A stretch of 64,000 nucleotides of DNA from Mytilus californianus. Taxonomy: Eukaryota. The stretch is taken from positions 64,232,001 through 64,296,000 of the forward strand of contig NW_026262690.1 in NCBI RefSeq assembly GCF_021869535.1. Reading direction: 5' to 3'. Positions 9,026-43,462 of the stretch are shown piece after piece. The notes under the pieces are model-generated. The model was not told where the DNA came from. It worked only from the letters and a program-made list of their open reading frames with translations, and did not search any database. The position numbers and the translations under genes were made by a program. How positions within the stretch are numbered: the first letter of the stretch is position 1; each line of letters starts with the position of its first letter.

Positions 9026-9833
9026 ATGGTTTGCAACGAGAACACTGTTTCCTGTGCCGTTGTTGGTGATGGAATGGTTGGCAAGACATGTCTTACTAAA
9101 AGATTTGCTGGAAGCCAGTTCTCTGAACAATATGTGGCTACAGTTGCAGAAACATCCAGTGGGTCTGTTTCTGCGTACGGTGACAAATACAGCGTCAATA
9201 TCTATGAGGTAAATATCTATCTTTTTAATAAAACATAATGCGTTTGTGATTGATTAATTATAGATAGATCTTTAAAATGAAAATTTTTTAACCAATTTTA
9301 AATTTTCATCAAACTAGATATCAAAAGTTAACTAATTGACTTCTCATCAATAAGATGAAATATTTTATTAGACAAATATGAAACCAATGTTAGCTTTTTC
9401 ACCAAACTAAATATTCACAATATTATCAAATTACTTATGATTTTTCTCTTTATCTTTTCAGCATGAAGATCAATCAGCAAGATCCAAAACAATAACAGAA
9501 TCTGACGTCATTGTTGTGTGCTACAGTGCAGTTGACAAAGAATCATTTGAAAACGTCAAATCTTTTTGGATTCCACTTGTCAGAAAGCTCAATAAGAAGA
9601 AACCAATTGTTTTAGTTGCTACCCATAGTGACATGCGTGATGAAAATAATACCGACCATGTGTCAGACTCTGCAGGACAAAACTTCATGAAATCAATAAA
9701 TGCTGACTATTACAACAAATGTTCTGCTGCTACAAATGAGGGAGTACAGAATGTCTTCGAAAGCGTCGCCTGCGCCGCTATTAGATATAGAAAAAAGAAA
9801 ACCAATGTGCTTAAACGTGTTTTCGCACGATGA
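9026..9833 (+). CDS. g1: atypical Rho/Cdc42-like small GTPase lacking the G3 motif (184 aa; exons 9026-9208, 9462-9833)
   Basis: P-loop GDGMVGKT, switch I YVATV, G4-like VATHSD, G5-like KCSA. Donor GAG|GTAAAT at 9208/9209 and acceptor TTTCAG|CAT at 9461/9462 join in frame (phase 0) into an uninterrupted ORF ending KRVFAR*. Confidence 0.92.
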
Positions 9834-10309
9834 ACTTGAACTTATCTCTGCCCTGAGATAAACCTATATTTTACACATCTTGAAAAAGTGTTTAGAATAG
9901 CAAAAAACTTGCTGTAAAAAGACTTTGAGATAGAGAGAGTTGGAGATGGAATGTACCACTGGTGTACATTCCTAAGACGGATTCAAATACTGCTGTCGCA
10001 TTACAGTGATTGAGATGGAGAATAAGTAGTTCCGGTGATTTTCAAGGACACAAACTTACAAAAACAATATGAAATCAGTCATGATGATGAACTTAGAGAA
10101 AATAACTAATTTAGTGAAAAGACACAAACAATACTTGTATATGATTGTAAAAATAATAACAGTTTTTACTCTAATTTATGTTGTAAAAATAAATTATCTT
10201 ACATGAAATATATTTGTTCTGTTAACCATTTACTTATAATATATTGAAGGGATGACATGTAAAAGTTGTTACAATCAGTAAACTTTTGATAAAAATCGAA
10301 GGAAATATA

Positions 10310-10455
10310 TAAATAAGAAGATGTGATATGATTGTCAATGAGACAGCTCTCCATAGGAGACCAAATGACACAAAAATTAACAATTATAGGTCACCGTACG
10401 GCCTTCAACAATGAGTAAAACCCATACCACATAGTCAGCTATAAAAGGCCCCGTA
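10310..10455 (+). repeat. Dispersed repeat family A (AGAAGATGTGGTATGATTGCCAATGAGACA..), insertion shared with the g2 unit (~17528-17674)
   Basis: Absent at the homologous position behind g3, g4 and g5. Further copies lie at ~1830-1915, 10888-11008, 28450-28497, 38265-38340, 42110-42200, 50590-50690 and 53250-53310. Confidence 0.8.
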
Positions 10456-11390
10456 TACATTTTGAAACAAAATAACAATGTTACTGGGTAACACGTTTTA
10501 ATTCAAAAGAAAATAAGAACAATCATTGGATACATCAAATCGATAAAGAAGAGACAACATCATGAATACTTAAAAAAAGACGAAAAGACAAACAAAAGTA
10601 CAAAAAAACTACAGAATAAAATTAAGGTTGTGGAGGTGATGGTAAACGTTTGTGCTCCAAATGGTTAAGCAATTCCTGTCAATATCCACTAGTTTTTATT
10701 ATGTTCGAATTAATTGTGCTAAACACTTTCAAGACAAGTTTTAAATTCATGCCATTTTTCAACACCTATGTCAAATGTTCATGTTTTAGGCATAAAAGAA
10801 GAGATCAAAGATGCAAAGCTGAAATTAAAAACTCAAAAGCGGAGGAGAAACTGACAACGTCATGGCAGAAACGAACAAACGACACATAGACAAACAAGGC
10901 TCCGTGCTGAAGGCCGTACTGTGACCTTTAATGGTTTACTTTTACAAATTGTGACTTGGATGGAGAGTTGTCTCATTGGCACTCATACCACATCTTCTTA
11001 TATCTATAAACAACAAATCAAACCATTACATAGAAAACTAAAGATTGAGCAACACAAACACCGCCAAAAACCGGAGATCATCTCGAGTTATGTGTATCCG
11101 ACTTATATCAGTCCTTCATCTTTCTGTGCCTACCTGGTTCTAGGGATACTTCTAAACTTCTAGTGACATTGGTTTACTTTCAATTTATCTTACGTTTGTG
11201 AAGTCAAATATAAGTGATTGTGCTCATTCAAAATCATGAAATCTTTGTAGTGGACAAAATCTCTTTAAAAGAGAACACATTTTAATATGAATTAATAAGT
11301 ATGTGCCCTTTGAAATGGAAAATTAGATGTTGTGGAAGCTGGAATCAACACGTTTTGTCTCCAAATGTTAACGAAAGAAATGCAAAAAAC

Positions 11391-11735
11391 CGCCTGCCTT
11401 TAAGAGAATATAATATAACTTGATCGCTCTGTTTCTTCTATTGTTTGACAAATATCTCCTGCAAAGTGACTATTCTATTGTTTGTAAATTTGCATGTTTG
11501 TGATCGTATTAGCCCCCTGGAGTTCTACGTATTTGACCATTTCACTGCTTGTGGTTGGTAAATTGATATTGTTTTATTTATTCCATTTTTAGTTGGTATA
11601 TTTGACACTTTTGTTTACTTTAAGTATCATATATTTAAACTGTAGACAATCTTAAGCCCTAGTATTAGTATTGACAAACTAATAAAAATTCTCTCTTTTT
11701 CAACTAACTACTAGATACTAGTTATTTCTGTTTAT
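11391..11735 (-). promoter_or_regulatory. Orphan inverted copy of the g5 promoter (no gene body; TATA mutated)
   Basis: Colinear with 37127-37460. The TATA position reads CTCTTAAAGG on the minus strand instead of CTATAAAAGG. Confidence 0.75.
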
Positions 11736-13249
11736 ATGTTTATTTGAGATAGAATGTATAAAATGTGTTAAATATATGATAACACAATTAAATACACAAA
11801 GTAAAGACAGATCCAAGAAACAAAAAATAATACTTATGAAGATATTCAAAGTAAACTCTCAAAACTTTTATGTAACAGTTTTAACAGTAATAATAAAAAA
11901 AATGAGAATGGAAATAAAAGAAAATAGCAGGTTTATAGCAATAACAAACCATATGTCTTTAGAAAATACCAGATCAAACGTCAGTTCAGAAAACATAGAT
12001 AAACAAAAGATTTATCAACATTTACAATATCAAAGATAAGGTTAAATTCAGTTCCTACTTCACTTATGGCACATGTTGTATTGCTCAAGATAGGTGATTG
12101 TAAGTTATAAATGCAGGAAAGAATATGGGATCACGGCTACGAAAAATAAAACATGTCTGGCGTCAACAATGTACTCTTATTCTGAGGCAGCAAAAACCTT
12201 CTATCACTGAAATCTTAAGCTTTTTCAGGGAGAAACACAAGCCATTTAACTAAAATTTTCCATACAGTTACTGCCTATGTTGCTACTTAAAGATGAAAAG
12301 ATTCTACTGGGAAAACTGTCTTCCTTTTGTCGATAAGGTTTGTTCAATGTCAAGGAGTCAACACGAAAGTCAGGATATGATGCCGATATTCGTCAATTAC
12401 GATATAGAGGAACATCAAGGATAATGTTATCTTCTTTTCAGTTATCCAGAAAAAAAACCTGTATGGAGTAAGCCTCAACAAAACGGAAAGGAAATGAATT
12501 CAGATAATCCTAATAGGAATTTCAATTCCCGTTTAAAAACACGTCGGTCAAAAGAATTAATTTATATATTAAAAAATTATATAAACTGTCATCATTTTCC
12601 ATTCTGTTTTGTCGGTCTTTCATCTTGCATAGCAGAAAAGTGGTCTGTTCTGAAATTAATCGACAATATTTTTTTTCGTTTTGTGAAATTTCTTACTGAG
12701 TCTGATTTCGCATGGCAGGTGAGTCCTACATAGCAGAAGATCCTTACCGTGTCAACGCACCGGTCTCGTTTAATTTTGTAATTCATTTGATACTCTAAGG
12801 GTTCTTTTAATCTTGGTTTGTGCATTCAAAATGGATTTACGGTTTTTTGATCATCAGTAAACTACTGCTGCTACCTTTCCCTTTAACTATGACCAAAACG
12901 CATAACATCTTGTAGGCTAGAAAAGAGCCGATATTTCAAAGGAAAAAAAATAACGGCCCGATGTTATGTAGCGTAGTTTTAACTGTACGAGGGTCATTAA
13001 AAATGGAAAGGGATGATTATGTAGGGCCAACGTGATTAAGACAGCAACCTAAGAAACAAATTCAGACAGAATAGACATATGGAGGTCATCCCAAGGCCTT
13101 CGATGCCAAAGTCCAACCATTTAGCTCTGTCTTCTTAGTCTCTTTCGCAGTTAATTTCTAGTAAATAAAATTGAACAACTCATATTCATGGGACAATACA
13201 CCATAAAAGCCAAAAGATCCCAAAAGAGTATTCGATAGACATAAGAACT

Positions 13250-13963
13250 TGAGATAAAGTAATACAACAGATACAGTTAAGTCTGCCTTATATCTTGACT
13301 TAGATCTAGACATTGACAATGAGGGTCGGTTGAAAGCAAAACTCTTCGACAAAAGAGATGATTCTAGCTTCCCAAATGGGAACTTTCCATTTCTATGTAG
13401 CAACATTCCAGCAGCGCCTGCATACGGAGTATGAATATCCCAGTTAATAAGTATTCCGGAGCTTGCATTTCCTAGCATGATTTCCTTGATAGTGGGTTAC
13501 TGCTCACAAGGAAAATATTTAACCAAGAGTTCCAAGTGGTGAAGTTGAAATCATCCCTTTGTACATTTTACGGACGCAATCACGACTTGATTGACCGTAA
13601 TGGAATATCTGTTTCACAGATGACGACAGATATGTTCCAAGCTACAATCCCGTCCTCTTTTCCCCGAATGTGACATTCCAAATTAGCCTGAATACCGAGT
13701 TGGTACTTACAAGATTAACACGACGGGTGCCACATACGGAGCAGGATCTGCTTACCCTTCCAGGAGTACCCGAGATCACTACAAGTTTTTGGTGGGGTTC
13801 ATGTTGCTCAGCCTTAACTTTTTTATGTTTTGTTTTTTGTAGTGTTGTTATCTGTTTGTCTGTTTGTCTGTTTGTCTGTTGGTGTTTTTCTTTTTTAGCC
13901 ATGGCATTGTCAGTTTATCGACTTATGACTTTGAATGTCCCTTTGGTATCTGTCGCCTCTCTT
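13250..13963 (+). mobile_element. 5'-truncated Penelope-like retroelement (RT thumb fragment plus 3' UTR), inserted only in the g2 unit
   Basis: Decayed frame reads LEIK..YLDLDLDIDNEGRLKAKLFDKRDD..NFPFLCSNIPAAPAYGV. The homologous empty site is present in the g4 unit (~30525-30540). Confidence 0.8.
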
Positions 13964-16254: not shown

Positions 16255-16335
16255 GGCTGGAGATTTTACATTTGGCATAACACTTTTCTACTTACTTATC
16301 AAACATTCAAAGTTTTTAAAAAGAAATTGGAAAGC

Positions 16336-17054
16336 ATGGTTTGCTACGAGAACACTGTTTCCTGTGCCGTTGTTGGTGATGGAATGATTGGCAAGACATG
16401 CCTTGCTAAAAGATTTGCCGGAAGCCAATTCTCAGACAAGTATGTTGCTACAGTTGCAGAAACATCCACTGGATCTGTGTCTGCTTACGGTGACAAATAC
16501 AGCGTCAATATCTATGAGGTAAATATCTATTTTTTTATAAAAAAAAGTATTTGTAATTAGTTAATAATGAATAAAATGAAATATATTTAATGAGAAATTT
16601 AAAACCAATTTAAGCATTTTCATCAAACTAAATATCCACAATATTATCAAATTACTTATGATTTTTCTCTTTATCTTTTCAGCATGAAGATCAATCAGCA
16701 AGATCCAAAACAATTACAGAATCTGATGTCATTGTTGTATGCTACAGTGCAGTTGACAAAGAATCATTTGAAAACGTCAAATCTTTTTGGATTCCACTTG
16801 TCAGAAAGCTCAGTAAGAAGAAACCAATTGTTTTAGTTGCTACCCATAGTGACATGCGTGATGAAAATAATACCGACCATGTGTCAGACTCTGAAGGACA
16901 AAACTTTATGAAATCAATAAATGCTGACTATTACAACAAATGTTCTGCTGCTACAAATGAGGGAGTAAAGAATGTCTTCGAAAGTGTCGTCTTCGCCGCT
17001 ATTAGATATAGAAAAAAGAAAACCAATGTGCTGAAACGTGTTTTCGCACGATGA
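16336..17054 (+). CDS. g2: G3-less Rho-like GTPase paralogue (184 aa; exons 16336-16518, 16683-17054)
   Basis: Near-identical to g1 with an intact joined ORF and a GT-AG intron of 164 nt. P-loop is GDGMIGKT. Confidence 0.92.
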
Positions 17055-18487
17055 ACTTGAACTTATCTCTGCCCTGAGATAAACCTATATTTTACACATC
17101 TTGAAATGTGTTTAGAATAGCAAAAAACTTGCTGTAAAAAGACTTTGAGATAGAGAGTTGGAGATGGAATGTACCACTGGTGTACATTCCTAAGACGGAT
17201 TCAAATACCGCTGTCGCATAACAGTGATTGAGATGGAGAATAAGTAGTTCCGGTGATGTTCAAGGACACAAACTTACAAAAACAATATGAAATTAGTCAT
17301 GTTGATGAACTAAAAGAGAAAATAACTAATTTAGAGAAAAGACACAAACAATACTTGTATATTATTGTAAAAATAATAACAGTTATTACTCTAATTTATG
17401 TTGTAAAAATAAATTATATAACATGAAAAATATTTGTTCTGTTAACCATTTACTTATAATATATTGAAGAGATGACATGTAAAAGTTGATATAATCAGTA
17501 AACTTTTGATACAAATCATAGGAAATATAAAAATAAGAAGATGTGGTATGTTTGCCATTGAGACAGCTCTCCACAAGAGACCAAATGACAAAAAAATTAA
17601 CAACTATAGGTCATGGTACGGCCTTCAACAATCAGTAAAACACATACCACATAGTCAGCTATAAAAGGCCCCGTATACATTTTGAAACAAAATAACAATG
17701 TTACTGGGTAACACGTTTTAATTCAAAAGAAAATAAGAAAATCATTGGATACATCAAATCGATAAAGGAGAGACATCATCAAGAATACTCATAAAAAAGA
17801 CGAAGAGACAGGCAAAAGTACACAAAAAAAAAAAAACTACAGATTAAAATAAAGGTTATGAGGTGATGGTAAACGTTTGTGCTCCAAATGGCAAAGCAAT
17901 TCCTGTCAATATCCACTAGTTTTTTTTATAATGCTCGAATTAATGCACACTTTCAACACAAGTTTTAAATTCATTTAAATTTTTTCAACACCTATATCTG
18001 TTCATGTATTAGGCATAACAAAGAGATAAAAGATGCAAAGCGGAAATTAAAAACGCATAAGCGGATGAAAACTGACAACGTCATGGCAAAAACTAACAAA
18101 TGACAAATAGACAAACAACAAATCAAACCATTACATAGAAAACTAAAGAGTGAGCAACACTAACCCCGCCAAAAACTGGGGGTAATCTCGAGTTATGTTT
18201 ATCCGACTTATATCAGTCCTTCATCTGTCTGTGCCTACCTGGTTCTAGGGATACTTCTAATGACATTGGTTTACTTTTAATTTATCTTACGTTTGTGAAG
18301 TCAAATATAAGTGATTGTGCTCATTCAAAATCATGAAATCTTTATTGTGGACAAAATCTCCTTAAAAGCGAAAACATTTTGATATGAATTAATAAGTATG
18401 TGCCCTTTTGAAATGGAAAATTCGATGTTTGGGAAGCTGAAATCAACATGTTTTGTCTCTAAATGTAAACGAAAGAAATGAAAAAAC

Positions 18488-20694: not shown

Positions 20695-23400
20695 CGTTAT
20701 CTATTATAAAAAAATAATGGTAGACATCAAGTACTATGCAAACTGGGTCATATACCAATAAGTAGATTATATGCTATTTTTCAGGAGTGTGATAAAATTT
20801 CATTTTTTAGCCCGTTGTATGAATACATCCGTATTATTACAGCCTTTTGTCATCACAGGCTGTTTCCTATTATCGATGAACCTGAAAATCATAAAAGGCA
20901 TTTTCTTAAATTAAAATATATAAATAGAGGTATTGATTTTATTTACTTATCTAGTATATTCAATGACTCTACCATCTATAGCCAAATACCTCCATATTTT
21001 GATAAGACAGAACCACCTATTATTTCGTATTCTTATAAAAAAAACCAGCAGAAGTTTGATTTTTAATCATACGTCAGTTACATCAGACGTCAATATAGAA
21101 TATAATGCTCCTTCCACTTGAGACTGTGAAACATCTAGTTTTAGATATGTTCCCTATGGTCATGTCATTCCAGGAGACCCCAACATCGCCGAAGACCGTT
21201 ATGTTAAAACTTTTCTTAAGAAAGGACCTAAATATCGTCCTCCATCTATAATAGATTGGAAACATTGTCGTCAGATCATTAAAGACGCTTTGTCTGCCTA
21301 CTGTAAAAATTGGTGTAAAAGTCTAAAATCTGATAAAAAATCTCTAGACAGTTATTTGAATAACATTATGAAAACTGTTGATATTCGTATATCTCATTTT
21401 GAAAACAATTCTGAAATTAATAGTAGTGTCAATGATATACCCATTTCTAGAATAAAAAATAAACTCCGAGTACTCGCAAAGCGGTTTGTGTTCGTACCGC
21501 AGACAAGGCAGCCAATACTATACGGAAGTTCTCCAAAACGAAATTATCAATTCGTCTACATTCAGTTCCGAACGCTCCACAGAGAGTCAAATTGTAAACA
21601 AGCATATCACTGCCACTACCCAGCTTAAAGCCTTTTCCGAGAATTTGAAAGTCCCGACTATGTACTGGTTACCTAAATTACACAAACAACCATTTGAATT
21701 CCGTTTCATCTCCGCATCTAGTAAGTGTTCTACTACTAATCTGTCAGTGCTTCTAACTACCTCCCTTACTACTATCAAAGAACTTGTAATTAACTTTCAT
21801 AAAGCTTATCAAAATAATGGTATTAATTATTTTTGGAGTGTTAAAAATTCCTTAGAGGTTTTGGATAAAATACGTGTTTTATGGTCCTTTTAATTCTGTT
21901 AACAGTTATGATTGTTCTACTCTCTACACTACACTTTAATATAATCTTATCAAGAAATAATTTTAATATTCAATTAAATGGTCTTTTGAAAAATCTCATT
22001 ACAAATTTATTTGCTGTAACTCGTTTAAAGCCTTTTTCTGTAACGAAAAAGGAAAGTATGCTAGATACAATTACTGGAAATGTGAAGATATGATTGAAGC
22101 TTTAAATTTTCTCCTGGACAACATATATGTACATTTCGGCGATAAAGTGTATCGACAGGTAGTAGGTATTCCTATGGGCACTAACTGAGCCCCTTTAATA
22201 ACAGATTTATTCCTTATTGCTATGAATCTCAGTTTATGACCGAACTCAGTAAAGACACGTCATTGTTACATTTGGTTGATACATTCAACAATACCTACCG
22301 TTATCTTGATGATATTTTTTCGTTAAATAATCCAGAGTTCTCTAAATATACTACCGAAATTTACCCAAAGGAACTTACTTTAAATAAATCTAACATAAAC
22401 AGCAGTAGTTGTCCTTTTCTAGATTTAGACATTTCAATTTCTAAAGGGAAAATCCATACTAAAATTTACGACAAAAGAGACGATTTTTCTTTCCCTATTG
22501 TTAATTTTCCTTTTTTAGACGGCGATGTTCCTTTGGCTCCATCATACGGTGTTTATATATCCCAACTCGTTCGTTATGCCCATGTGTGTAGCGTTGTCAT
22601 AGATTTTAACGAACGTAATCAATACATCACTGGTGAATTATTAAGTCAGGTATTTCGTTACCATAAATTACATTAAACTTTTTCTAGATTCTTTCATAGA
22701 TATTTAAGTAAATTTGGCTGTACCTGTAGAAAACTTATTAAAAACAGAATTTCACATCCTAAATTTTACGGTAATATTGTACTAAAAGCGCGGAAAACAC
22801 TATGTGATCCGTGTAAACTCATCGAACTTTTAAACAAACTCATACCGCATCTTCTTATATCTATTTTTAGTAAAGGTTATCTTACCAATGTTGTAATAAG
22901 ATCTTTGAATTCCTGGGATGTGTTTTAGTTGATTTTAGTCTATGATGCATGATTTTTTATTATTAATTGTTTTTGGCTTTTAACTAGCTTTCAGTAACTG
23001 CGAGTACTCTCAAATCGTACTTCCGTGTTAATTTGACCTGTTTATACAATTTGTAATGCATTTTTGTTATTTAATGTTTACTTATCTAGTGTTATATCTC
23101 GTCTCACTATTTTTAATATTTTCCACCTTTGATAAGTGTTTGGTATGACGCTAAATTTTCACTTCTGTTCTCGTACTTTGAACAACAAAATTATTTATTT
23201 TGTAAAAAATATTTCCGTACTCCATGTATACCTTACAACAAAATTATTTTTATTTACCTGTGTACGTCATTTTATTTGGTGGCATTTTGTCCAAGGTTAT
23301 GGTTGTCTTTCTGATATTGTTTTACATCTAACCTCCTTGTTTTATTAATTTTGTATTTACATTGTGTCATAGATCAAATTTATTCGTTCAGTGTATGTTC
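20695..23400 (+). mobile_element. Decayed, 5'-truncated Naiad-type Penelope-like retroelement
   Basis: Fragments include a CxC-linker region (PST*DCETS..GHVIPGD..KGPKYRP), MYWLPKLHK, GIPMGTN*AP, YRYLDDIF, PFLDLDI, YDKRDDF, YGVYISQLVRY and a C-terminal ISHPKFYG. It has multiple frameshifts and TAA stops. The empty site is at ~14104 in the g2 unit. The 3' boundary is approximate. Confidence 0.85.
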
Positions 23401-26115: not shown

Positions 26116-26833
26116 ATGGTTTGCTACGAGAACACTGTTTCCTGTGCCGTTGTTGGTGATGGAATGGTAGGCAAGACATGCCTTGCTAAAAGATTTGCTG
26201 GAAGCCAATTCTCAGACAAATATATTGCTACAGTTTCAGAAACATCAACTGGATCTGTATCTGCTTACGGTGACAAATACAGCGTCAATATTCATGAGGT
26301 AAATATCTTTTCATACAAAAAAAAGTTTTTGTAACTGATTAATTATAAATAGATTGATTTATATCAAATGATAAATTTGAAAACCAATTTGTGCTTTTTT
26401 ACCAAACTAAATATCAACAGTATTATCAAATTACTTATGATTTTTCTCTTTATCTTTTCAGCTTGAAGATCAATCAGCAAGATCCAAAACAATAACAGCA
26501 TCTGATGTCATAGTGGTATGCTACAGTGCAGTTGACAAAGAATCATTTGAAAACGTCAAATCTTTTTGGATTCCAATGGTCAGAAAACTCAATAAGAAGA
26601 AACCAATTGTTTTAGTCTCTACCCATAGTGACATGCGTGATGAAAATAATACCGACCATGTGTCAGACTCTGAAGGACAAAACTTTATGAAATCAATAAA
26701 TGCTGACTATTACAACAAATGTTCTGCTGCTACAAATGAGGGAGTAAAGAATGTCTTCGAAAGTGTCGTCTGCGCCGCTATTAGATATAGAAAAAAGAAA
26801 ACCAATGTGCTTAAACGTGTTTTCGCACGATGA
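26116..26833 (+). CDS. g3: G3-less Rho-like GTPase paralogue (184 aa; exons 26116-26298, 26462-26833)
   Basis: Intact joined ORF with a 163-nt GT-AG intron. The exon junction reads VNIHE|LEDQSAR. Confidence 0.92.
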
Positions 26834-28077
26834 ACTTGAACTTATCTCTGCCCTGAGATAAACATATACTAAACACATCTTGAACTGTGTTCAGAAAAGC
26901 TAAATAGCTGTAAAAAGACTTTGAGATAGAAGGAGTTGGAGATGGAATGTACCACTGGTGTACATTTCAAAGACGGGTTGGAATACTGCTGTCGCATTAC
27001 AGTGATTGAGATGGGAATAAATTGGTCCCGTGATGTTGAAGGACACAAACTTACAAAACAATATGAAATTAGTCATGATGATGAACTTAAAGAAAAAAAC
27101 TTATAAAATTATGGTGAAAAGACACAAACAATACTTTTATATTATTGTAAAATAATAACTGTTATAACTTAATATATATTATAAAAATAAATTATCTTTT
27201 ATGAAAAATTCTTGTTTTGTTACCTACAATACATTGAATGAATGACATGTAAAAAACAATGAAAAGTATGCATATTGAAACAAAATATCATTGTTACTGG
27301 GTAAAACTTTTCATTTGAAAGCAAAAAAGAACGTATCATTTGATAAAGGAGAGACAACATCACAAACTCTCAGAAGAAAATAAAAGCCGAAAAGACATGC
27401 AATAGACCACAAAAAAATAAAAAAAATATGCAGGTTATGGTAAACTTAGGTGTTCCCAATGATAAAGCTATTCCTAGGCATGATCCACTAGTTCTTTTAA
27501 TGTTTAATCTAATTATGCAGTACACTTTCAACATGAGATTGTTAATTATGCAACTATTTTTTAACATCTTTGTCAAATGTTCATGTATTAGAAAAAAAAA
27601 AGATCCAGAAAATACAAAAGGTACATTAAACTGTCATAAGTCGAGAAGAAACTGACAACGCCATGATAAAAAAAAAACCAAAACAAACGAGAAAAAGACA
27701 AATAAGTCAACAAATCACTACATAGAAAACTAAAAACTGAGCAAAATGATCCCCACCAAAAAGCGGGTGATCTCGGTTTATGTTTATTCGACTTATATCA
27801 GTCCTTCATCTTTCTGTGTACACCTGGTTCTTCGGATACTTTTATTGACATTAGTATACTTTCGTCTTATCTTTAAGTCAAATATTAGTGAATGTGCTCA
27901 TTCAAAATCATGAAATCTTTGTTGTGGACAAAATCTCTTTAGAAGCGATCAAAATTTAATTTTGACTGATAGCTATATGCCACTCCGAAATAGAAATTCG
28001 ATGTTTTGAAAACTTAAATCATAACGTTTTGTATCCAAATTTCAATGAAAAAATGTTTCATCTAAATTGCATTAAAA

Positions 28078-32911: not shown

Positions 32912-33708
32912 ATGGTTTGCTACGAGAACACTGTTTCCTGTGCCGTTGTTGGTGATGGAATGGTTGGCAAGACTTGCCTTGCTAAAAGATTTGCTGGAGG
33001 CCAATTCTCAGACAAATATGTTGCTACAGTTGCAGAAACATCCACTGGATCTGTATCTGCGTACGGTGACAAATACAGCGTCAATATCTATGAGGTAAAT
33101 ATCTATCTTTTTAATAAAAAAAATGTATTTTTAATTCAGTAATTATGAATAGATGAAATGTGAAGTTTAAAACCAATTTTAAATTTTTCAACAACTAGAT
33201 ATCAAAAGTTAATTAATTAACTACTTATTGAATCATATTTTGAAAGACAAATATGAAACCAATGTTAGCTTTTTCCCGAATCTGAATATCCACATTATTA
33301 TGAAATTACTTATGATTATTCTCTTTATCTTTTCAGCTTGAAGATCAATCATCAAGATCAAAAACAATAACAGAATCTGACGTCATTGTTGTGTGCTACA
33401 GTGCAGTTGACAAAGAATCATTTGAAAACGTCAAATCTTTTTGGATTCCAATGGTCAGAAAACTCAATAAGAAGAAACCAATTGTTTTAGTTGCTACACA
33501 TAGTGACATGCGTGATGAAAATAATACCGACCATGTGTCAGACTCTGAAGGACAAAACTTCATGAAATCAATAAATGCTGACTATTACAACAAATGTTCT
33601 GCTGCTAAAAATGAGGGAGTAAAGAATGTCTTCGAAAGTGTCGTCTGCGCCGCTATTAGATATAGAAAAAAGAAAACCAATGTGCTTAAACGTGTTTTCG
33701 CACGATGA
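32912..33708 (+). CDS. g4: G3-less Rho-like GTPase paralogue (184 aa; exons 32912-33094, 33337-33708)
   Basis: Intact joined ORF with a 242-nt GT-AG intron. The exon junction reads VNIYE|LEDQSSR. Confidence 0.92.
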
Positions 33709-36341
33709 ACTTGAACTTATCTCTGCCCGGAGATAAACCTATATTTTACACATCTTGAACTGTGTTTAGAATAGCAAAATACTTGCTGTAAAAAGACATT
33801 GAGATAGAAGGAGTTGGAGATGGAATGTACCACTGGTGTACATTCCAAAGACGGATTGAAATACTGCTGTCGCATTACAGTGATTGAAACGGAGAATAAG
33901 TAGTTCCCGTGCTGTTCAAGGACACAAACTTAAAAAACAATATGAAATCAGTTATGATGATGAACTTTAGGAGAACATAACTAATTTAGTGAAAAGACAC
34001 AAGAATACTTGTATATTATTGTAAAAATAATAACAGATATTACTTTAATTCATGTTATAAAAAAAATAAATTATCTTACATAAAAAAATATTTGTTCTTT
34101 TAACTATGTACTTAATGAAGGAATGACATGTAAAAATTGATACAATTAGTAAACTTTTGATACAAATGGATGGAAAGTATACATTGTTAAACAAAATATA
34201 AATACTAGTGAGTAACACGTTTAAATCTAAAAGCAAATAAGAACACATCATGGGATACAACACATTGATAAAATAGAGACAACATCATGAATACTACTAC
34301 TTAGGGGAAAAAAAGATGAAAAGACAAATAAAACTCCACAAAAAAATTACAGCGTAAAATAAAGGTTGAGGAGATAAAGTGATCGTGTATTGTCCCAATG
34401 GTTAAGCAATTTCTAGTCATTATCTACTAGTTTTTATCATGTTCAAATTAGTTGTACAGCACACTTTCAACGCTAGTTTTTAAATCATACAATTTCATAC
34501 AATGTCAAATGTTCATGTATTAGGGATAAAAAAAGAGGAAAAAGATACGAAGCGGATATTCAAACCAATATTGTATAACAAAATACAACAATAGAAAACA
34601 AGATACAAAAAATATATTTCCTCAGATCAACGTAAAAAAAACAACATTGATTACAAGTATCACGTTAATAAAAATTATAAAGAGGCAACAACAAAGAGAG
34701 GCGAAAGATACAAAAAGGACATCCAAACTCACAATTCGAAAATAAAATGACAACGCCATGGCAAAAAAAGAAAAAAAAAACATGTCGTAAAATGTATCTT
34801 GTCTTATGGGGCTTGTATATCAGATTGATTAAAATAATATAGTATTTGAGGCATTTAGCAGTTTTCTATAAATAATACATATCACTTTGCAAAGATTACG
34901 TTGCTTTGTTATCGTGCGTTATAGAAGTGCACATAAACACTGAAGAACGGTAAAAATTTATACATGGACTTTTAAGAAAAATCTGGAGGAAACTCCTTCT
35001 TTCCATTTTCTGTTCAATATATAGAGAAATTGAACCAACAAATAACCACTGCGACAAGACGAGACAAGCATCTTACCTACACAAACACCTCTCGGTTGAT
35101 ATTTTTTGACAAAAGAACACACAACGTGATAATTTCAGCTTCCAAATTTCCAATTTTCTATTTCGGAGTGGTACTAGTACTTCATATTAAAGTTTGGTCG
35201 CTTCTAATGAGATTTTCACAACAAATATTTCATGATTTTTAATGAGCGCAATCACTGATATATGACTACACAAATGTAATATAAGATGAAAGTATACCCA
35301 TGTCATTAAGGAATCCTGGTACAGACAGATAAAAGACTGATACAAGTCGGATAAACATAAGTTGAGATCACCCCCTATTTTTTGGTTAGGGTTCGTGTTG
35401 GTTAATCTCTAGGTTTCTATGCAATGTTTTGTTGACTTGTCTTTCTGTCTTTTGTTCGTTTTTTGCCATGTTGTTGTAAGTTTCTCCTCTAATTATAAGT
35501 TTTGAATATCCCCTTCGTATCCTTTGACTCTTTTTTAATTCCTAATTCATGAACATTTGACATTGGTCTTGAAAAAAATTGTATAATTTTAAAACTTGCG
35601 TTGAAAGTGTGCTGTACAACTAATTGAACATTATAAAAACTAGGACATCATGACTACGAATTTGTTTTATATGGGACCACACACGATAACTATAACCTCC
35701 TCAACCTTTATTTAACGCTGTAATTTTTTTGTGGACTTTTGTTTGTCTTTTCATCTTTTTCCCCCTGAGTAGTAGTATTCATGATGTTGTCTCTATTTTA
35801 TCAATGTGTTGTATCTTAAGATGTGTTCTTATTTGCTTTTAGATTTAAACGTGTTACCCAATAGCATTTATATTTTGTTTAACAATGTATACTTTCCATC
35901 CATTTGGATAAAACATTTACTGATTGTAACAATTTTTACATGACATTCCTTCATTAAGTACAAAGTTAACAGAACAAATATTTTTTATGTAAGATAATTT
36001 TAAAGTAATTATTGTTATAATGTTTCCAATATCATACATGTATTGTTTGTGTCTTTTCACTAAATGAGTCCTTTTCTCTTTAAGTTCATCATCATAACTG
36101 ATTTCATATTGTTTTTCTAAGTTTGTGCTCTTGAACATCACGGGAACTGCTTATTCTCCGTTACAATCACTGTAATGTGACAGCAGTATTTCAATCCGTC
36201 TTTGGAATGTACACCAGTGGTACATTCCATCTCCAACTCCTCCTATCTCAATGTCTTTTTACAGCAAGTATTTTGCTATTCTAAACACAGTTCAAGATGT
36301 GTAAAATATAGGTTTATCTCAGGGCAGAGATAAGTTCAAGT

Positions 36342-37055
36342 TCATCGTGCGAAAACACGTTTAAGCACATTGGTTTTCTTCTTTCTATGTCTAATAGACG
36401 ACACTTTCGAAGACATTCTTTACTCCCTCATTTGTAGCAGCAGAACATTTGTTGTAATAGTCAGCATTTATTGATTTCATAAAGTTTTGTCCTTCAGAGT
36501 CTGATACATGGTCGGTATTATTTTCATCACGCATGTCACTATGGGTAGCGACTAAAACAATTGGTTTCTTCTTATTGAGTTTTCTGACCATTGGAATCCA
36601 AAAAGATTTGACGTTTTCAAATGATTCTTTGTCAACTGCACTGTAGCATACCACTATGACATCAGATTCTGTTATTGTTTTTGATCTTGCTGACTGATTT
36701 TCATGCTAAAAATATAAAGAAAACAATCATAAGTAAGTTGCTAATAATGTAGATATTAAGTTTCGTGAAAAAGCTAAGCTTGGTTTTAAATTTCTTATCT
36801 TTAATATTTCGATATATTTTTAACTTATCAATCACAAATATTATCTTTTTATATAAAAAGAAATATATTTACCTCATAGATATTGACGCTGTATTTGTCG
36901 CCGTAAGCAGACACAGATCCAGTGGACGTTTCTGCAACTGTAGCAACATATTTGTCTGAGAATTGGCTTCCAGCAAATCTTTTAGTAAGGCAGGTCTTTC
37001 CAACCATTCCATCACCAACAATGGCACAAGAAACAGTGTTCTGGTAGCAAACCAT
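36342..37055 (-). pseudogene. g5: inverted G3-less Rho-like paralogue with an 8-bp deletion giving a premature stop (165 aa product; exons 37055-36873, 36705-36391; ancestral stop at 36342-36344)
   Basis: Compared with g4 (GTCGTCTGCGCCGCTATTAGA), g5 reads GTCGTCTATTAGA: GCGCCGCT is lost between 36396/36395, giving TAG at 36391-36393 and removing the basic tail. Splice sites and promoter are intact, so a truncated expressed protein is not excluded. Confidence 0.75.
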
Positions 37056-37134
37056 TTTGAGATATACTAAGATTGGTCCTCGTCAGTGTTATAAATCAAC
37101 AAATGTGTTATGAAAAAAGCTTACAATCGCCTGC

Positions 37135-37290: not shown

Positions 37291-38344
37291 GTAAATTGAT
37301 ATTGTTTTATTTATTTCATTGTTTGATAGTTTAGTTTCTAATTCTGTTTACAATTACATACTTGAACTGTTGATAATATTAGTGCTAGTACAAGTATCAT
37401 TCACAAACATAAAAATTATATCTTTTGTAGTGATTGAACTTCTAAATACTAATAATTGTTGTTTTAAACATTCTTTCTTGTGATATTATTATGAAAGATA
37501 CGTTAATATACACAAATTCTTATCACTACAAAAACCTTGTGTATACTCAGGTACTCTACAACGGTAATCATATTCTGCTCAACTTACGGGACCAATGGTG
37601 TTGCTCATGATAAACGAATACCAGCTGATAAGTCACATTCTGTGATGTTCTAATAGCGAGAAGACATTTAGAATCATGGCTATGACAATAATAATCTCGT
37701 TTAAATAAATTATTAGCCTGTTATCATTGATGAGTTCAATGAAATCACTGGGTCAATGCCACTGCTTGGCGTGAAATATCAATGATACGGTCAATTTCAT
37801 TAAATGTTCTGCTCACTATTTTTTTTTAACGTGAAACACTTAGGATTTTCTACTCCAGTCATATGTCCGTATTTTTGGTTACATTTTCGTTATTTGGTTT
37901 TCTATGCCGTCAACATTCTTTTTGATAAGGCCTTCCAACTGATTTAATTCGAGCGCCACTCACGAGCCTTATGTAAACGAAACGCACGTCTGGCGTAACA
38001 AATTACAAGCATGGTATCCTTGAGGAGTTTTTTAGCAGCCTTCCTATATTTTAGATTCTTTTTACGTTAAAACTCAGACCCTTGTATATTGTATCAATTA
38101 AAGTTGTAGATACAAATTTCTTGTTTTACGAAAAATCTTTTAGAAGAACTATACTGATTTTAACCCCAAAAATTACCAAAGGAGATATCAACAAAAAACT
38201 AAACTTTTTGATCGCCATTTTATTAGTCGTATTCAGTTAATTGATATTTCAACAAAAATGAAATAAAAAGCAGATGTGGTATGAAAGCTAAGGAGACAAC
38301 TATTAACCAGAGACCAAATATATTAGATGTAAATCAATACGCAT

Positions 38345-38660
38345 CCGGTTTCACCCTTTTCCCCTTTTTCCCTAATGTGACCTACCGAATTAGACTTATC
38401 ACCGGGTTTGTACTAACATGAGCTACACGACGGGTATCACATGTGAAGCGGGACCTACTTACCCTTCCGGAGCACCTGATATCACCCCAAGTTTTTTGGG
38501 AGGTTCGTGTTGCTCAGTCTTTAGTTTTCTATGTTGTTTTTTGTGTACTGTTGTTTGTCTGTTGGTCTTTTTCTTTTTAAGCCATGGCGTTGTAAGTTTA
38601 TTTTCGACTTATGAGTTTGAATTTCCCTTTGGTATCTTTCGCCTAGCTTTTTCTCTTTCT
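38345..38660 (+). mobile_element. 3' non-coding segment of the same Penelope-like family as 13640-13963
   Basis: Shares ACACGACGGGT..CTTACCCTTCC..TTGCTCAG..AGCCATGGC..GACTTATGA..CCCTTTGGTATC with 13720-13960. Reverse-strand remnants occur near 27640, 34700 and 45170. Confidence 0.7.
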
Positions 38661-41600
38661 TTGTGTTTTCAAAATATATTTATGAGTTTTGATAACTGTA
38701 AACTATTGTTGCCTCCTACTCAAAAAATTGAAAACAACACGTTCAATAATTCAATGCGTCCGAAGCGCCCCTCTGGGCCCACCCTCATCAGGAACGCCCA
38801 AAACCAAACATCCGAAATCAGGGGATGTACAAATACCAAAACAGCTGAAGAGCCAGACGACAAAAATACCCAAAAGAAATAGCCAAATCCATCCAAGGTC
38901 AACGACCTAAAATACGACCAAATACAAGTAAGTAAAGATTATTCTTAAAGATGAACTTTTGAAACTGATATGACACACACTCAAACAAAAGCAAGAGGTA
39001 AATGCATTTAAGTTATTATTTATCCAGAGATACTTGTGAATGTTTATTTTATGTTGAAATTGCAAATAAAGGGTCTTGAATATTGTTTTTCAATTTGATC
39101 GAATGATTCTAGAAAATTGCAGTGTTACCTTTTCAATTTAACCATGCCTAAATAGTAATTAAGTTCGTGTAAAATCAAAAAACAGAAATATCGCTATCAT
39201 TGTACAATAAGTAAAAAACATGAATGGAACAGCAAAAGGAGTGTTCGATAGACATAAGAACTAAATAAATGGATTCTATTTAAGCCAAAATAAATAGTCA
39301 ACCTACACATCATTTATTTTCATTATAATAATTCAAAAAGATTACTTATTTAGATGTGTTCGACGTCAATGTTTTTTTGTGAAATATTCAGACATCTTAA
39401 GTCAATGAATTTGCACATAAGTCTTAGGAAAACCTGAATTGTCATTTGGAATTTCGTTAACTAGGAATTTCTAGATGTCAACAATTCATTGTAAAAACGA
39501 ACAATAATAATTATAATAGTCAAGGATACACAAAATAACTGTTGATTATCATTTTTCGTGTTTAGGGAGTAAAAATAGATAATTCTGAACCTTTTATAAA
39601 TTAATATTTCCATTCCTATTCCTATTTCTATATTTTTACTCGACCATTCTGAGATTCCAAATATTCATCTACATTGTTCACTAGCGTATCAACGCTGAGG
39701 TTTGCGTTCGAGTGCTGAAAGTGGCGTTTAACATTAATAAATATATCAATATGTTAGCAAAGAAGGTTTTTTTTATGTCTTATGTTTTCTGTTTTTATCC
39801 CTTTATCATTTTTTTTTAAATTCAAAACAACACATTTAGCTTTAATTTCAGTTAGTCAATTTCATTGCAAATAAACAAATATGTAAAGCGAGAGTATACA
39901 TTATGATACAGGTAAATTTTCAAACGAATTCAATCTCGGATGCAGTTGTTGATTACAATATTAAAAATATGAAAACTTGAAAGAGTAGGAAAACTTTGAA
40001 TTGGTAACATAACACAGCATACATAAAACATTGTAATGGTATTCATATGTTTGTTGTCTTTTTTATCGAAAAAAAAATAGCCTATAAATACCTTTTTTCA
40101 ATCCAGAGATATCAATAATTAGCCAAAAACATAAAATTCGGTTGATAAATAGAATTTAAATAACCAAAATATCTATTAAAATTTTATTATATGATAGTAT
40201 CTAATAAATATAAAGTACCATTGAGCATTACAAATGGTTAACATTCAAGAGGAATGATAAGTTCATACAAAGTTACTCGGGCAATAAACATTATATCTTC
40301 AACATACATTGTCTGACATGGAAAAAAGGATAGAAAATACCAAGGGAACAATTTCAAACCAGTAGTCGCAAAAGACAGACAAACCCATGACAAAAACCAC
40401 AACAGTTTAAGACTCTACACAGAAAATGAAACATGAACAGCATTTTAAAGAAGGCTGAACTCAGCAGTTTCTGTCCTGCAATGAGAATTATTTGAAATAT
40501 AATATTTGTTCTTTATATGAACCATTAACCTTTTTGATATGTGAACTTTGACATTAGTGCCTGTACCAAGTCAGGTTATGGCAGTTGTTTTTACGCATAT
40601 GCGTTCCTTTGGTTGATATATCCTAAAGTTGGATGTTGTCATGGTTCCCCGTTTTGAATTTACCCTGTAGTTCACCTAGAAAGCACCTTGTTCCTAATGT
40701 GCATAGAACATTTGTGTTATCAAACGCTTTTGAAAATTTCCAAATGCAGCTGAAAGAGGTAACACATTTTATCTGTTTTTCTTTTAAATGGAAATGAACA
40801 TAACTAGAGAACACTCACATTTTAACCAGCCATTAGAACACATTAACACATAAATCTGCAATATCGCCGATAAGAATTCTAAATTGAGAACTGTTTAAAT
40901 TTTACTGAATGCAAATACATCAAATAACAATTTTGAAAAAAACTATAAAAAATACATTGTTCTATCAATATGTATATTCAGCCTTAAACCATGTCAAAAA
41001 CCAATTAATAAAATCCAATTTATGAAAATATCTGTCAACTGTTACACTTTTGCCGTTGAATAAAAAGAATATTTAAATACTTCCACTTTTATTATATCCA
41101 AAAACTTGACGCATTTAAATGTATATCACTACATTCCAACTAGCACTGTAATTACGCTCACAATTGTGTACAAAGAACACTTGCTTATAAAAAATTACAT
41201 CAAATTTACTCCGAACTACGCTATTCGAGGCACTGGTTTTGAAATGAAAAAAAGCAAAATGTTTCATGCTTTTTATATAGAGGAAATGAAGTTGCTTATT
41301 ATAGCAACTGTATATCCCATATGCTCCAAATCTTGACAATGTACTACCACCTGAACGCCTCATATTACTGCAATTATAATATCTCTGCAGGGAATAGATT
41401 CTTTTGTTCAAAATCAAAACAATAAATATGATACCTTTCTGTTGGCCTAATGTGTATATATTTTTCAAAACAAAGGCGAGTTTACAATGCATATTTACCC
41501 CCATAAAGATTGAAGAGTGTGCCGAAATGAATGAGCTGGAATATTTAGAGTACACATTTTTTGTATCAATGTATTGTTTATAAAAATTATAAAATCTGTG

Positions 41601-42457
41601 TAAAGGACACTTATGTCCTGAGTTCTATAAAATAGCTGTTCATGTATATTATTTCGTCCAAAGATTCCTCGTGGGTCTGTATATGGTCAATGACTATGTA
41701 AATATCCGATCCTATCCAATTCTTAACTATGTCCAATAGTAATCAATTGTCTCGGCTATAGTCATTTTATATTTGTGGTCACTTTTAACCTTATGGAAGT
41801 ATGATAAAAAGTTATTCTTTACTCGATCTTAAACTGTTATCTAGTTTCCCTTGATGGTGTCAACTAGAACTAATCTGAATAGTTCTATGAAAGATTATTT
41901 TGACAGTTCTTGAGAGAGGTAGAACTTTCTAAACTATATCTGTTATTCACTTTTCCAAAAGGAAATACATAAATCTATCTTTTCAAATATCTTACTAAAA
42001 TGTAATTACAATTTGCAAGAGTTGTCTCTTTGGTCAACAAAATGTAAAATGCGATGACCCACTGATGGCGTTAATTAAACATGAGTTACAAAGGTTTACT
42101 AACAATATAAGAATAATGTAGACGTGATATGATTGCCAATGACACAACTATCCACCTGGGGACCAAAGGATAAGGATATAAATAATTAAAATAGTCATAC
42201 CGTACAGTAAGCAAAGTCAGTTATTAAATAATATTCCTATTTGTTATTCCTGTTTTCTCTGTATTAACTGTGTACTGATAACGTATAGTATTTTTCTGTG
42301 TAGAGTTTAAAAACTATCAAATATCAAAACAAAACAACAACAAAAAAACAACATCAGAATATTCAATAACATGAAGTTAACAAAGTTTTTTTTTTCTTTT
42401 TAACTTCAATGAGATAAAAAGGGCTAAAAATAAAACAAGAATAAAGTTTCGTATTTC

Positions 42458-42612
42458 AACCACAAGCAGCGATAGAGTCACCTTGGTTGTAATACTTGGG
42501 GGTAAATTTGATCACCCAGTATTGACAGTTTTTAACAACGGAATCTTCACTTTGCAGGAGATCTTAATTAACAATGGATTTACCCAGGCAAACGACTCGG
42601 TATTTATAAAAG
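42458..42612 (+). promoter_or_regulatory. g6 core promoter (TATAAAAG at 42605)
   Basis: AACCACAAGCAG, TTGGGGGT, GCAGGAGAT and AACAATGG motifs, with the TATA box 87 nt before the ATG. Confidence 0.65.
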
Positions 42613-42691
42613 AGCTGAAGATTTTACATTCTGGCATAACACTTTTTCTACTTACTTTAACGTTTAAAGATTTGAAAAGAGATCGGAAAGA

Positions 42692-43462
42692 ATGGTTTGC
42701 TACCAGAATACTGTTTCCTGTGAAATTATTGGTGACGGAATGGTTGGCAAGACATGCCTTACTAAAAGATTTGCCGGAAGCCAGTTCTCTGATAAATATG
42801 TGGCTACAATTGCAGAAACAACCAGTGGATCTGTGTCTGCTTATGGTGACAAATACAGTTTGAATATTCATGAGGTAAAAATTGATTTGTTACATAGTAT
42901 TTTATAAGAATCTTTTCAATTCTCTATAAATAGAACTTGATATTTATTTAGATTTAATTAAATTAAGCGGAATATTCAATTTTATTTACACAAACATAAA
43001 TTACAAACATGCCTTTAGAGTATAAATGAAATAAATTGAAGATATTTTATTTTTTCGTTTACTTATCATTCTTTCATTTTATCTTTTCAGCAAGAGGAAA
43101 AATCAACAAGATTACAATCAATTACAGACGCTGACGTTATCATTGTATGCTATAGTTCAGTTGACAGGGAATCATTTGAGAATGCCAAATCCGTCTGGGT
43201 TCCAGAGGTTAGAAAACTTCACAAGAAAAAGCCGATTGTTTTAGTGGCAACTCAAAGTGACATTCGTAATGAAAATAACATTGATCACGTTTCCGACATT
43301 GAGGGACAGAATTTAATGAAATCAATAAATGCTGAATACTACAACAAATGTTCTTCCGCTACTAATGACGGAGTCAAAAATGTCTTTGAAAGTGTTGTTT
43401 GTGCCGTCATTAGATACCGCAAGAAGAAGACAAATGTACTGAAACGAGTTTTCGCACGATGA
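42692..43462 (+). CDS. g6: older, diverged G3-less Rho-like GTPase paralogue (184 aa; exons 42692-42874, 43091-43462)
   Basis: Donor GAG|GTAAAA at 42874 and acceptor TTTCAG|CAA at 43090. The junction reads LNIHE|QEEKSTR. The ORF is intact and the 3' UTR is unrelated to that of g1-g5. Confidence 0.92.

Follow-up and report, generated by a model that had tools for sequence, protein, structure and literature searches.

A 64,000-nucleotide stretch of the Mytilus californianus genome (NCBI RefSeq assembly GCF_021869535.1, contig NW_026262690.1, positions 64,232,001 to 64,296,000 of the forward strand; the whole stretch is called the window) contains eight small-GTPase genes, six of which lack most of the G3 (D-x-x-G-Q) motif of switch II. 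These genes, g1 to g8, were found by tblastn with the exon peptides of g4 and were then given explicit gene models and conceptual splices; each has two exons. They are set out below, with a caret at the splice site. Numbers beginning with P and L are our handles for proteins and contigs, respectively, and positions without an L number are those of the window.

g1, 9026-9833, + strand (tblastn and gene model): exon 1, 9026..9208, 61 codons, ending NIYE, donor GAG^GTAAAT, TATAAA at -89; exon 2, 9462..9833, starting HEDQSARSK, stop codon included.
g2, 16336-17054, + strand (tblastn and gene model): exon 1, 16336..16518, 61 codons, ending NIYE; exon 2, 16683..17054.
g3, 26116-26833, + strand (tblastn and gene model): exon 1, 26116..26298, 61 codons, ending NIHE; exon 2, 26462..26833, starting LEDQSARSK.
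g4, 32912-33708, + strand (tblastn and gene model): exon 1, 32912..33094, 61 codons, ending NIYE; exon 2, 33337..33708, starting LEDQSSRSK.
g5, 37055-36342, - strand (tblastn), tail-to-tail with g4: exon 1, 36873..37055, 61 codons, ending NIYE; exon 2, 36391..36705, shortened by an 8-nt deletion (..ESVVY and stop), with an out-of-frame remnant of the basic tail reaching 36342.
g6, 42692-43462, + strand (tblastn and gene model): exon 1, 42692..42874, 61 codons, ending NIHE, donor GAG^GTAAAA; exon 2, 43091..43462, starting QEEKSTRLQ; orthologues P0010, P0031 and P0032.
g7, 45821-46538, + strand (tblastn and gene model): exon 1, 45821..46015, 65 codons, ending IKDTNGQ, G3 intact; exon 2, 46167..46538, starting HEDENTRSQ; M. 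coruscus orthologue P0264, 188 aa.
g8, 57041-56067, - strand (tblastn and gene model): exon 1, 56847..57041, 65 codons, starting MGLSRN.. and ending IKDTAGQ, G3 intact; exon 2, 56067..56438, starting FEDSEMREM; the most divergent of the eight copies.

Exon 1 is 183 nt long in g1-g6, where it ends ..AAT ATC/ATT TAT/CAT GAG^GTAAA(T/A), and 195 nt long in g7 and g8, where it ends ..GAT ACA AAT GGT CAG^GTATGA and ..GAC ACT GCA GGA CAG^GTAGGT, respectively. The register of exon 2 is common to all copies (HED, LED or QEE in g1-g6, HED in g7 and FED in g8). The acceptors are all pyrimidine-rich and end in CAG (TTTCAG, TGCAG or TTACAG), the introns span 151-408 nt, and TATAAA lies upstream of the ATG at -87 to -90 in g1-g6 and g8 and at -76 in g7. 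Open reading frames (ORFs) of 184 codons are intact in g1-g4 and g6. An earlier note made from the letters of the window had described a first exon of 61 codons in g1-g6 and 65 in g7 and g8 with exon 2 in register, five intact copies with splice sites and TATA promoters, and an expansion beside G3-intact relatives; the gene models agree with it in each of these respects, and the expansion is in tandem. The splice products of g1, g2, g3 and g4 are identical, residue for residue, to RefSeq XP_052105490 (P0027), XP_052105491 (P0004), XP_052105493 (P0002) and XP_052105494 (P0026), so the splice junction chosen by the NCBI pipeline, GAG^GT..AG^C(A/T)T, is the one modelled here.

In g1-g6, the residues I(Y/H)E run straight into [HLQ]E(D/E), so that the T-x-G-Q of G3 is absent. 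The claim that the whole G3 motif had been lost holds for these four residues and needs qualifying for the first, since the acidic position is retained as Glu instead of Asp. In Ras and Rho proteins, the Mg2+ water is positioned by Asp57; the gamma-phosphate is bound by the amide of Gly60, which also drives the conformational change of switch II; and the orientation of the attacking water depends on Gln61.

An alternative donor, acceptor or micro-exon that restores DxxG can be ruled out. No GG dinucleotide is found in the introns of g1-g4 (from the gene models) or of g5 (read by eye), as the earlier note had stated, and one occurs in the g6 intron. The decisive evidence comes from intronless orthologues. 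One is an uninterrupted 549-nt ORF of 182 aa (..SVNSYEDQSARSK..) at L001:2122-2670, on a 5.2 kb ENA contig (L001); the promoter of this ORF and the sequence on both sides of it can be aligned with the window's g5 locus. The M. edulis assembly has a 20 kb stretch with five single-exon G3-less genes of 549 nt, of which four share a strand and the fifth is on the opposite one:

L002:3772, + strand, 549-nt single-exon gene.
L002:6756, + strand, 549-nt single-exon gene.
L002:10001, + strand, 549-nt single-exon gene.
L002:16548, + strand, 549-nt single-exon gene.
L002:19426-19974, - strand, 549-nt single-exon gene.

Next come a g6-type gene, whose intron is 197 nt long, and a g7-type gene ending IKDTNGQ, in the same layout as in the window. 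At least three single-exon 549-nt G3-less genes are also present in M. trossulus (L003: 823, 3683 and 10001). These orthologues read ..YEDQSAR.., with TAT GAA GAT at the junction. Since they are continuous ORFs, no alternative splice or micro-exon can supply D-x-x-G in those species.

In the intronless copies, the segment missing between two ATGA repeats (T-ATGA-G^gt.. and ..ag^C-ATGA-A) is made up of the intron and 6 coding nt; this suggests a deletion by microhomology in the genome, which subsequently reached the other copies of the array in the M. edulis complex. The loss of the 6 additional coding nt in L001 fits such a deletion better than reverse transcription, and an origin of L001 as a processed retrocopy or a transcript is ruled out by the synteny of its promoter and both flanks with the g5 locus. 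Throughout the M. edulis complex, all g1-g5-type genes are intronless and encode 182 aa within an otherwise syntenic array; gene conversion or re-expansion appears to have carried the intron loss to all copies. The intron is kept in g1-g5 of M. californianus, and the M. coruscus proteins of 184-185 aa suggest that it is kept there as well.

The G3-less form is not confined to Mytilus. A more divergent G3-less gene, with an exon 1 end of ..SVNIQE^GTAAAT and the P-loop GDEMVGKT, is found on an ENA contig (L005). An 8.9-kb scaffold (L011) carries another, L011A (..NIHE^GTAATT, then NQEHSARIQ..), 3.16 kb upstream of a G3-intact gene, L011B (..DIRDTNGQ^GT); g6 and g7 follow each other in the same order at 3.13 kb. 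The metagenome that yielded L011 was taken from sea water just above a mussel and crab community at the Site F cold seep, South China Sea (PMC9357000), and the source of L005 and L011 is probably another mytilid, a deep-sea (bathymodioline) mussel. A codon-model tree groups all the G3-less genes in a single clade, with an ultrafast bootstrap value (UFBoot) of 96. Within it, the g1-5 type (100) and the g6 type (100) are joined at 99, and L005 and L011A form their sister pair at 95; the g7 type groups with L011B (79), with g8 as the outgroup. Because L005 and L011A fall inside a single G3-less clade, the four codons were lost once, and the tree dates this loss after the duplication that set the g7 lineage apart and before Mytilus and the other mytilid separated. 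Across that split, the synonymous divergence (dS) is 0.9-1.3.

Selection was estimated with the pairwise Nei-Gojobori and YN00 methods and with a GY+F3X4 codon model for 15 G3-less coding sequences (182 codons). Pairs of G3-less genes have ratios of nonsynonymous to synonymous divergence (dN/dS, omega) of 0.08-0.31, including the deep pairs with dS of 0.8-1.3. For g6 against g1-g4, dN is 0.11 and dS is 0.80-0.97. The dN/dS is 0.24 between the g6 orthologues of M. californianus and M. edulis, 0.09-0.31 between g1-g4 and the M. edulis copies, and 0.10-0.17 between L005 or L011A and the Mytilus copies. The codon model gives an omega of 0.152 with a kappa of 1.36 and a log-likelihood (lnL) of -2114.51; fixing omega at 1 lowers lnL to -2229.49, which, at a difference of one parameter, amounts to 2ΔlnL = 230. 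For the orthologue pair of the G3-intact g7, omega is 0.19-0.21. As the G3-less value is comparable to this, the constraint was not relaxed after the loss of G3. The earlier note had called the G3-less form old and maintained, citing a heavy synonymous divergence of g6; the single clade that reaches a second mytilid lineage, the dS of g6 and an omega far below 1 all bear this out. On the evidence of these sequences, the G3-less form is old, selected and real.

A quite different reading is that the G3-less genes are decaying duplicates or annotation artefacts without function. Two observations are in its favour: the frameshift in g5, and the failure to find Mytilus G3-less transcript contigs. 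In g5, 8 nt are deleted near the 3' end, by which C-A-A codons are lost, the frame is shifted and a premature stop arises, and g5 is probably a pseudogene in M. californianus; the orthologues in M. edulis (P0001) and on L001 are both undamaged. The deletion (36342-36400, minus strand) takes out ..GCGCCGCT.., and the protein ends before the basic tail. As to transcripts, besides proteins annotated from genomes, the Mytilus 90% clusters of G3-less proteins contain the genomic ENA contig L001, the partial ORFs P0033 and P0034, and nothing else. The same transcript-contig approach works for an oyster paralogue, and the oyster relatives have many contigs; the Mytilus copies may be expressed at a low level or in few places, or near-identical paralogues may assemble poorly. 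Against the reading, ORFs are intact both in five species of Mytilus and in a further mytilid lineage, the codon model rejects neutrality, and TATA boxes, splice sites and a 3' untranslated region (3'UTR) hairpin are conserved. Loss of function is thus very improbable as an explanation, and pseudogene decay of the G3-less branch is ruled out at the level of sequence evolution by the omega of 0.15. A separate observation concerns the M. edulis g7-type gene (L004:13279-13985), in which a run of A near the 3' end is one A shorter (GGGATGAAAATG vs GGGATGAAAAATG) and the frame shifts before the basic tail; the missing A could be a true lesion or an assembly error in the homopolymer.

The kind of protein encoded is indicated by profiles and by the predicted fold. 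Pfam Ras (PF00071) matches the exon 1 peptide with 36.2 bits and the exon 2 peptide with 61.2 bits, against a cut-off of 21.6. The best match among solved structures by sequence is Cdc42 (E 2e-27, about 30-35% identity), and all 60 solved-structure matches listed are Cdc42, TC10, Rac or plant Rac-like proteins. An AlphaFold2 model of g3 (P0002), made with a 40-sequence family alignment, has a predicted local distance difference test score (pLDDT) of 87 and a predicted template modelling score (pTM) of 0.85; the g7-type M. coruscus protein P0264, modelled for comparison, reaches the same confidence. The g3 model has the canonical six-strand, five-helix G fold (beta1-alpha1-beta2-beta3-alpha2-beta4-alpha3-beta5-alpha4-beta6-alpha5), with RhoA, RhoB, RhoG, Rac1 and Cdc42 as the best fold matches at a template modelling score (TM) of about 0.8. 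The two models differ at switch II: in g3, beta3 (53-62) and alpha2 (65-74) are connected by 2 residues, whereas in P0264 a 7-residue loop, D-T-N-G-Q-H-E, separates beta3 (53-61) from alpha2 (69-78).

The remaining nucleotide-binding motifs are in place. The P-loop (G1) reads GDGMVGKT in agreement with GxxxxGK[ST], the switch-I Thr (G2) is T39, G4 is T[HQ]SD, in which Gln is Cdc42-like and His is unusual at the second position, and G5 is CSA. Only DxxG with its catalytic Gln is missing, in g1-g6 and in the intronless orthologues alike. Among 32 distinct G3-less proteins, G14, G16, G19, K20, T21, T39, T115, S117, C148 and S149 are invariant, D118 is kept in 31, and A150 is Ala in 28 and Ser in four. 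The basic tail, R171-K180, does not vary, and the most variable stretch comprises residues 59-75, the end of beta3 and switch II. Judged from the alignment, this pattern of constraint is what would be expected if the nucleotide pocket were still used and switch II were no longer a functional surface.

The mussel proteins resemble Cdc42, Rac and RhoA in the P-loop GDGxVGKT, the switch-I Thr, the Cdc42-like TQxD/THxD G4, the CSA of G5 and a Rho-typical C(Y/F)S..SFENV..W.PE stretch. They differ from them in the absence of T-x-G-Q, of the Rho insert and of a CAAX box, in a switch II that is four residues shorter, and in the effector loop, which reads ATVAETS vs PTVFDNY. The Rho insert is defined as 10-15 residues between beta5 and alpha4 (PMC7600811, PMC4669188); here there is a 9-residue gap relative to Cdc42, and the insert is missing throughout the molluscan family described below. 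All copies end in ..RKKKTNVLKRVFAR without a Cys. The term 'Rho-like', which the earlier note used, consequently holds for sequence similarity and not for the insert and the CAAX box, by which the proteins would not count as members of the Rho family (PMC7600811).

Could the shortened proteins still be working switches, with Glu61 in place of Asp57, Gln65 in place of Gln61 and a shortened switch II? HMMER pairs E-L-E-D-Q of g3 with D57-T-A-G60-Q61 of Cdc42 and inserts a 4-residue gap further on in switch II, and E-[HL]-E-D-Q is present in all of g1-g4. The proteins are G3-less by homology, in that T-x-G-Q is gone; structurally, switch II has four residues fewer, and the place of Gly60 is taken by an acidic residue. 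The 182-aa forms, however, read Y-E-D-Q-S or F-E-I-Q-S, which brings the Gln two residues closer, and it is not at that place in the g6-type E-H-E-E-K, which has Lys there, or in E-N-Q-E-H of L011A. Moreover, the Gly60 position would hold Asp or Glu, and the high variability of residues 59-75 is the opposite of what a catalytic loop shows. We consider it quite unlikely that these proteins switch in this manner. A conserved substitute motif of the form E-x-x-D-Q is ruled out, as both the register and the Gln vary among the G3-less lineages.

It is also conceivable that no nucleotide is bound and that the proteins are pure interaction scaffolds with a G fold, like class i pseudoGTPases. In favour of this, neither the Asp that positions Mg2+ nor the Gly that contacts the gamma-phosphate is present, the AlphaFold2 model leaves only a two-residue turn of switch II, and the literature describes class i pseudoGTPases whose fold is normal (PMC12490416; PMC5593906). 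Class i proteins have lost most of their G motifs, however, whereas here GxxxxGKT, the switch-I Thr, T[HQ]SD and CSA are near-invariant in 32 proteins at a dS of about 1. Without a bound nucleotide, such conservation of G1, G2, G4 and G5 would be difficult to account for, and it makes the nucleotide-free scaffold unlikely.

Gene structure, age, selection, motif conservation and predicted fold are what the analysis itself establishes. Taken as a whole, they are probably best explained by nucleotide-holding, non-switching 'pseudo-GTPase' adaptors from a mollusc-specific Rho-like family; the binding of nucleotide, the absence of hydrolysis and switching, and the association with membranes are what we infer from them. 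In the G3-less branch, the last 12 nt of exon 1 have ceased to code, either by deletion or because a new GT donor arose 12 nt upstream. T-x-G-Q of the G3/switch II motif D-x-x-G-Q was thereby lost once, with Glu left where Asp had been, before Mytilus split from the second mytilid lineage. The branch then multiplied, to g1-g5 and g6 in the window and to five or more copies per Mytilus species, under purifying selection no weaker than on the G3-intact neighbour. Conservation of the P-loop, the switch-I Thr, G4 and G5 makes it most likely that a guanine nucleotide is still bound. Where T-x-G-Q has given way to a two-residue turn, the difference between GTP and GDP would not be passed to switch II, so that the gamma-phosphate would be uncoupled from it and the normal, Gln-assisted route of hydrolysis would be shut. 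The product would be a constitutively loaded adaptor, tethered to membranes by its basic amphipathic C-terminal helix and controlled through expression level and gene copy number rather than through a cycle of GEFs (guanine nucleotide exchange factors) and GAPs (GTPase-activating proteins).

Canonical partners are unlikely, to judge from the primary structure, because the effector loop ATVAETS is changed at F37, D38 and Y40 and the switch II residues for Dbl GEFs, GAPs and the guanine nucleotide dissociation inhibitor (GDI) are missing; GDI binding is unlikely also because there is no prenyl group. The earlier note had offered scaffolds, GEF sinks and decoys as possible roles. Of these, the GEF sink would be the least likely, since in the model the Dbl-type GEF docking surface, switch II, is cut to a two-residue turn. 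A doubtful but conceivable variant is that a naturally selected G domain, with a permanent nucleotide and with neither DxxG nor switch II coupling, was multiplied in mussels to serve as a decoy for, or a sensor of, pathogen effectors by which Rho-family GTPases are modified. On this rather speculative view, the switch-I Thr and a Rho-like surface would have been kept, and Gln61, the GEF, GAP and effector contacts and prenylation would have been stripped away.

Several points weigh against loaded, non-switching adaptors. The loss of the roles of D57 and G60 could lower nucleotide affinity to a nucleotide-free state, and the gap-free HMMER alignment of E-L-E-D-Q with D-T-A-G-Q leaves formal room for a residual Glu/Gln-based mechanism. 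The binding motifs are altered in some copies: M. trossulus P0005 has TQSE instead of TQSD as G4, another M. trossulus copy has the P-loop GEGMVGKT, and L005 has GDEMVGKT. These copies are located as follows:

L003:10001-10549, G3-less copy with an altered binding motif.
L003:3683-4231, G3-less copy with an altered binding motif.
L005:2167-2349, G3-less copy with an altered binding motif.

To these points are added the broken g5 of M. californianus and the absence of any full-length spliced transcript contig from the Mytilus G3-less 90% clusters (Logan contigs), an absence that is uninformative.

Known GTPases offer partial parallels. RhoH and RhoBTB1/2 are nucleotide-bound, non-hydrolysing and regulated by abundance. 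Rnd1-3, RhoH and RhoBTB1/2 keep DxxG and a full switch II and are changed only at the counterparts of G12 and Q61, and Rnd and RhoH possess both a CAAX box and the Rho insert. In the mussel proteins, by contrast, the motif is excised rather than substituted. RGK proteins (Gem, Rad and Rem) and Rit have a non-canonical G3 and bind membranes by a basic C-terminus without CAAX; they belong to the Ras branch and have a substituted G3, whereas the mussel proteins are Rho-like with a deleted one. Entamoeba EhRho1 (3reg), which is among the top fold matches, is a Rho-related G domain that has no Rho insert, and its G3 is normal. Rnd proteins are nucleotide-bound and non-hydrolysing and are set by abundance instead of GEFs and GAPs (PMC13236570), and we propose Rnd1-3, RhoH and RhoBTB1/2 as a working analogy for how the mussel proteins may operate. 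Class i pseudoGTPases (p190RhoGAP pG1/pG2, CENP-M and AAGAB) have a G fold without switch or catalysis (PMC5593906; PMC12490416), as the mussel proteins would have; however, they have lost nearly all G motifs and the nucleotide, while G1, G2, G4 and G5 are kept in the mussel. The N-terminal GTPase of Miro is Rho-related, has no Rho insert and its first G3 is not DxxG (PMC7600811), but Miro is a large multidomain mitochondrial protein.

The closest relatives are other molluscan genes. By exhaustive profile search and name look-ups, the family was delimited as mollusc-wide, with members in oysters, pearl oyster, scallops, a unionid, Solemya and Aplysia. Its traits are GDGMVGKT, Y(I/V)ATV, (V/I)VCYS.(V)DRESF, a C-terminal RKKKxxxLKRxFxR helix, a short beta5-alpha4 connection without the Rho insert, the lack of a CAAX box, and two exons; consecutive accession numbers in Magallana gigas show that tandem arrays occur there too. 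The G3 motif ranges over DxxGQ, DxxGE, DxxGH, DNSAE, DLSIE and DCSSK. It is present in Solemya (DSAGQ), in scallops (DSAGE and DPAGQ) and in oyster, Pinctada, Potamilus and Aplysia relatives, and in the oyster protein K1RHD5 (DIAGE) switch II is already four residues shorter. The paralogues with an eroded G3 (oyster XP_011427676 with DLSIE, Argopecten XP_069117253 with DCSSK, and K1RHD5) share the family tail and the tandem arrangement, but in them the motif positions are substituted, whereas the mytilid branch physically lacks four residues, including Gly and Gln. For the oyster DLSIE member (XP_011427676), four uninterrupted ORFs of ~0.9 kb were found on sequencing-run contigs, and the genomic copy has a 126-nt intron; the absence of this intron from the run contigs shows that the gene is transcribed and spliced. 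Graded G3 states (DLSGQ, DIAGE, DFGGE and DLSIE) occur in the tandem array that the oysters Magallana gigas and M. angulata have of this family:

L006:10001-10714, member of the oyster array.
L006:18441-19223, member of the oyster array.
P0200, P0214, P0065 and P0250, proteins of the oyster array.

A 2015 survey of bivalve Rho genes recognized canonical subfamilies only, with 'incomplete G1-G3 loops' in some C. gigas models, and listed a 'CgRac-2' of 2 exons, an 894-bp gene and 110 aa (PMC4669188). 'CgRac-2' may be a truncated model of an oyster member of this family.

Two further features of the array were noted. About 115 nt past the stop codon lies a 3'UTR hairpin, GAATGTAC-N7-GTACATTC, with a 9-bp stem (GGAATGTAC-N7-GTACATTCC):

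9949-9971, + strand, hairpin of g1.
17167-17189, + strand, hairpin of g2.
33823-33845, + strand, hairpin of g4.
36205-36227, hairpin of g5, a minus-strand gene.
Near 26944-26972, hairpin of g3, with a mismatch.
L005:3015-3043, further copy.
L001, about 2810-2840, further copy.

Four exact matches occur in the window and none in shuffled sequences, and the folding energy is -13.2 kcal/mol (z -2.6). The hairpin is 93-97% conserved between Mytilus and the divergent mytilid contig, where the rest of the 3'UTR is no longer alignable, and it is possibly an element of post-transcriptional control. Between g2 and g3, overlapping ORFs of 112-146 aa (21290-22676, + strand) include one with ..YRYLDDIF.., which resembles the YxDD box of reverse transcriptase, and may be a degraded retroelement; a Pfam search gave no match for two of these ORFs or for the longest other ORFs of the region.

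Automated annotation has given these genes names that mislead, as the earlier note expected. The RefSeq proteins of g1-g4, of 184 aa each, are labelled 'cdc42 homolog' or 'cell division control protein 42 homolog', and near-identical proteins of M. coruscus, M. edulis, M. galloprovincialis and M. trossulus are labelled CDC42, RAC1 or 'Ras homolog gene family, member Q'. That note knew of no Rho subfamily of this kind, and we found no published description of a G3-less one in the literature on pseudoGTPases, DxxG loss, and Mytilus and molluscan Rho proteins; in the literature searched, the molluscan Rho-like family to which the genes belong is undescribed.

DxxG is among the most conserved motifs of P-loop GTPases and couples the gamma-phosphate to switch II. 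In this mussel branch, it has been cleanly removed while the rest of the pocket was kept, under purifying selection, in many copies and across a deep mussel split. The G3-intact sisters, a few kb away, provide built-in controls with the same fold and tail (188 aa vs 184 aa), which makes the array a comparative system for how a Rho-like G domain behaves when it is unable to switch. More broadly, molluscs possess an undescribed family of Rho-like proteins without insert or CAAX box in which G3 has been eroded repeatedly, and the Cdc42, RhoQ, RhoU or RAC1 labels assigned to such genes by annotation pipelines would mislead studies of pathways and expression in bivalves.

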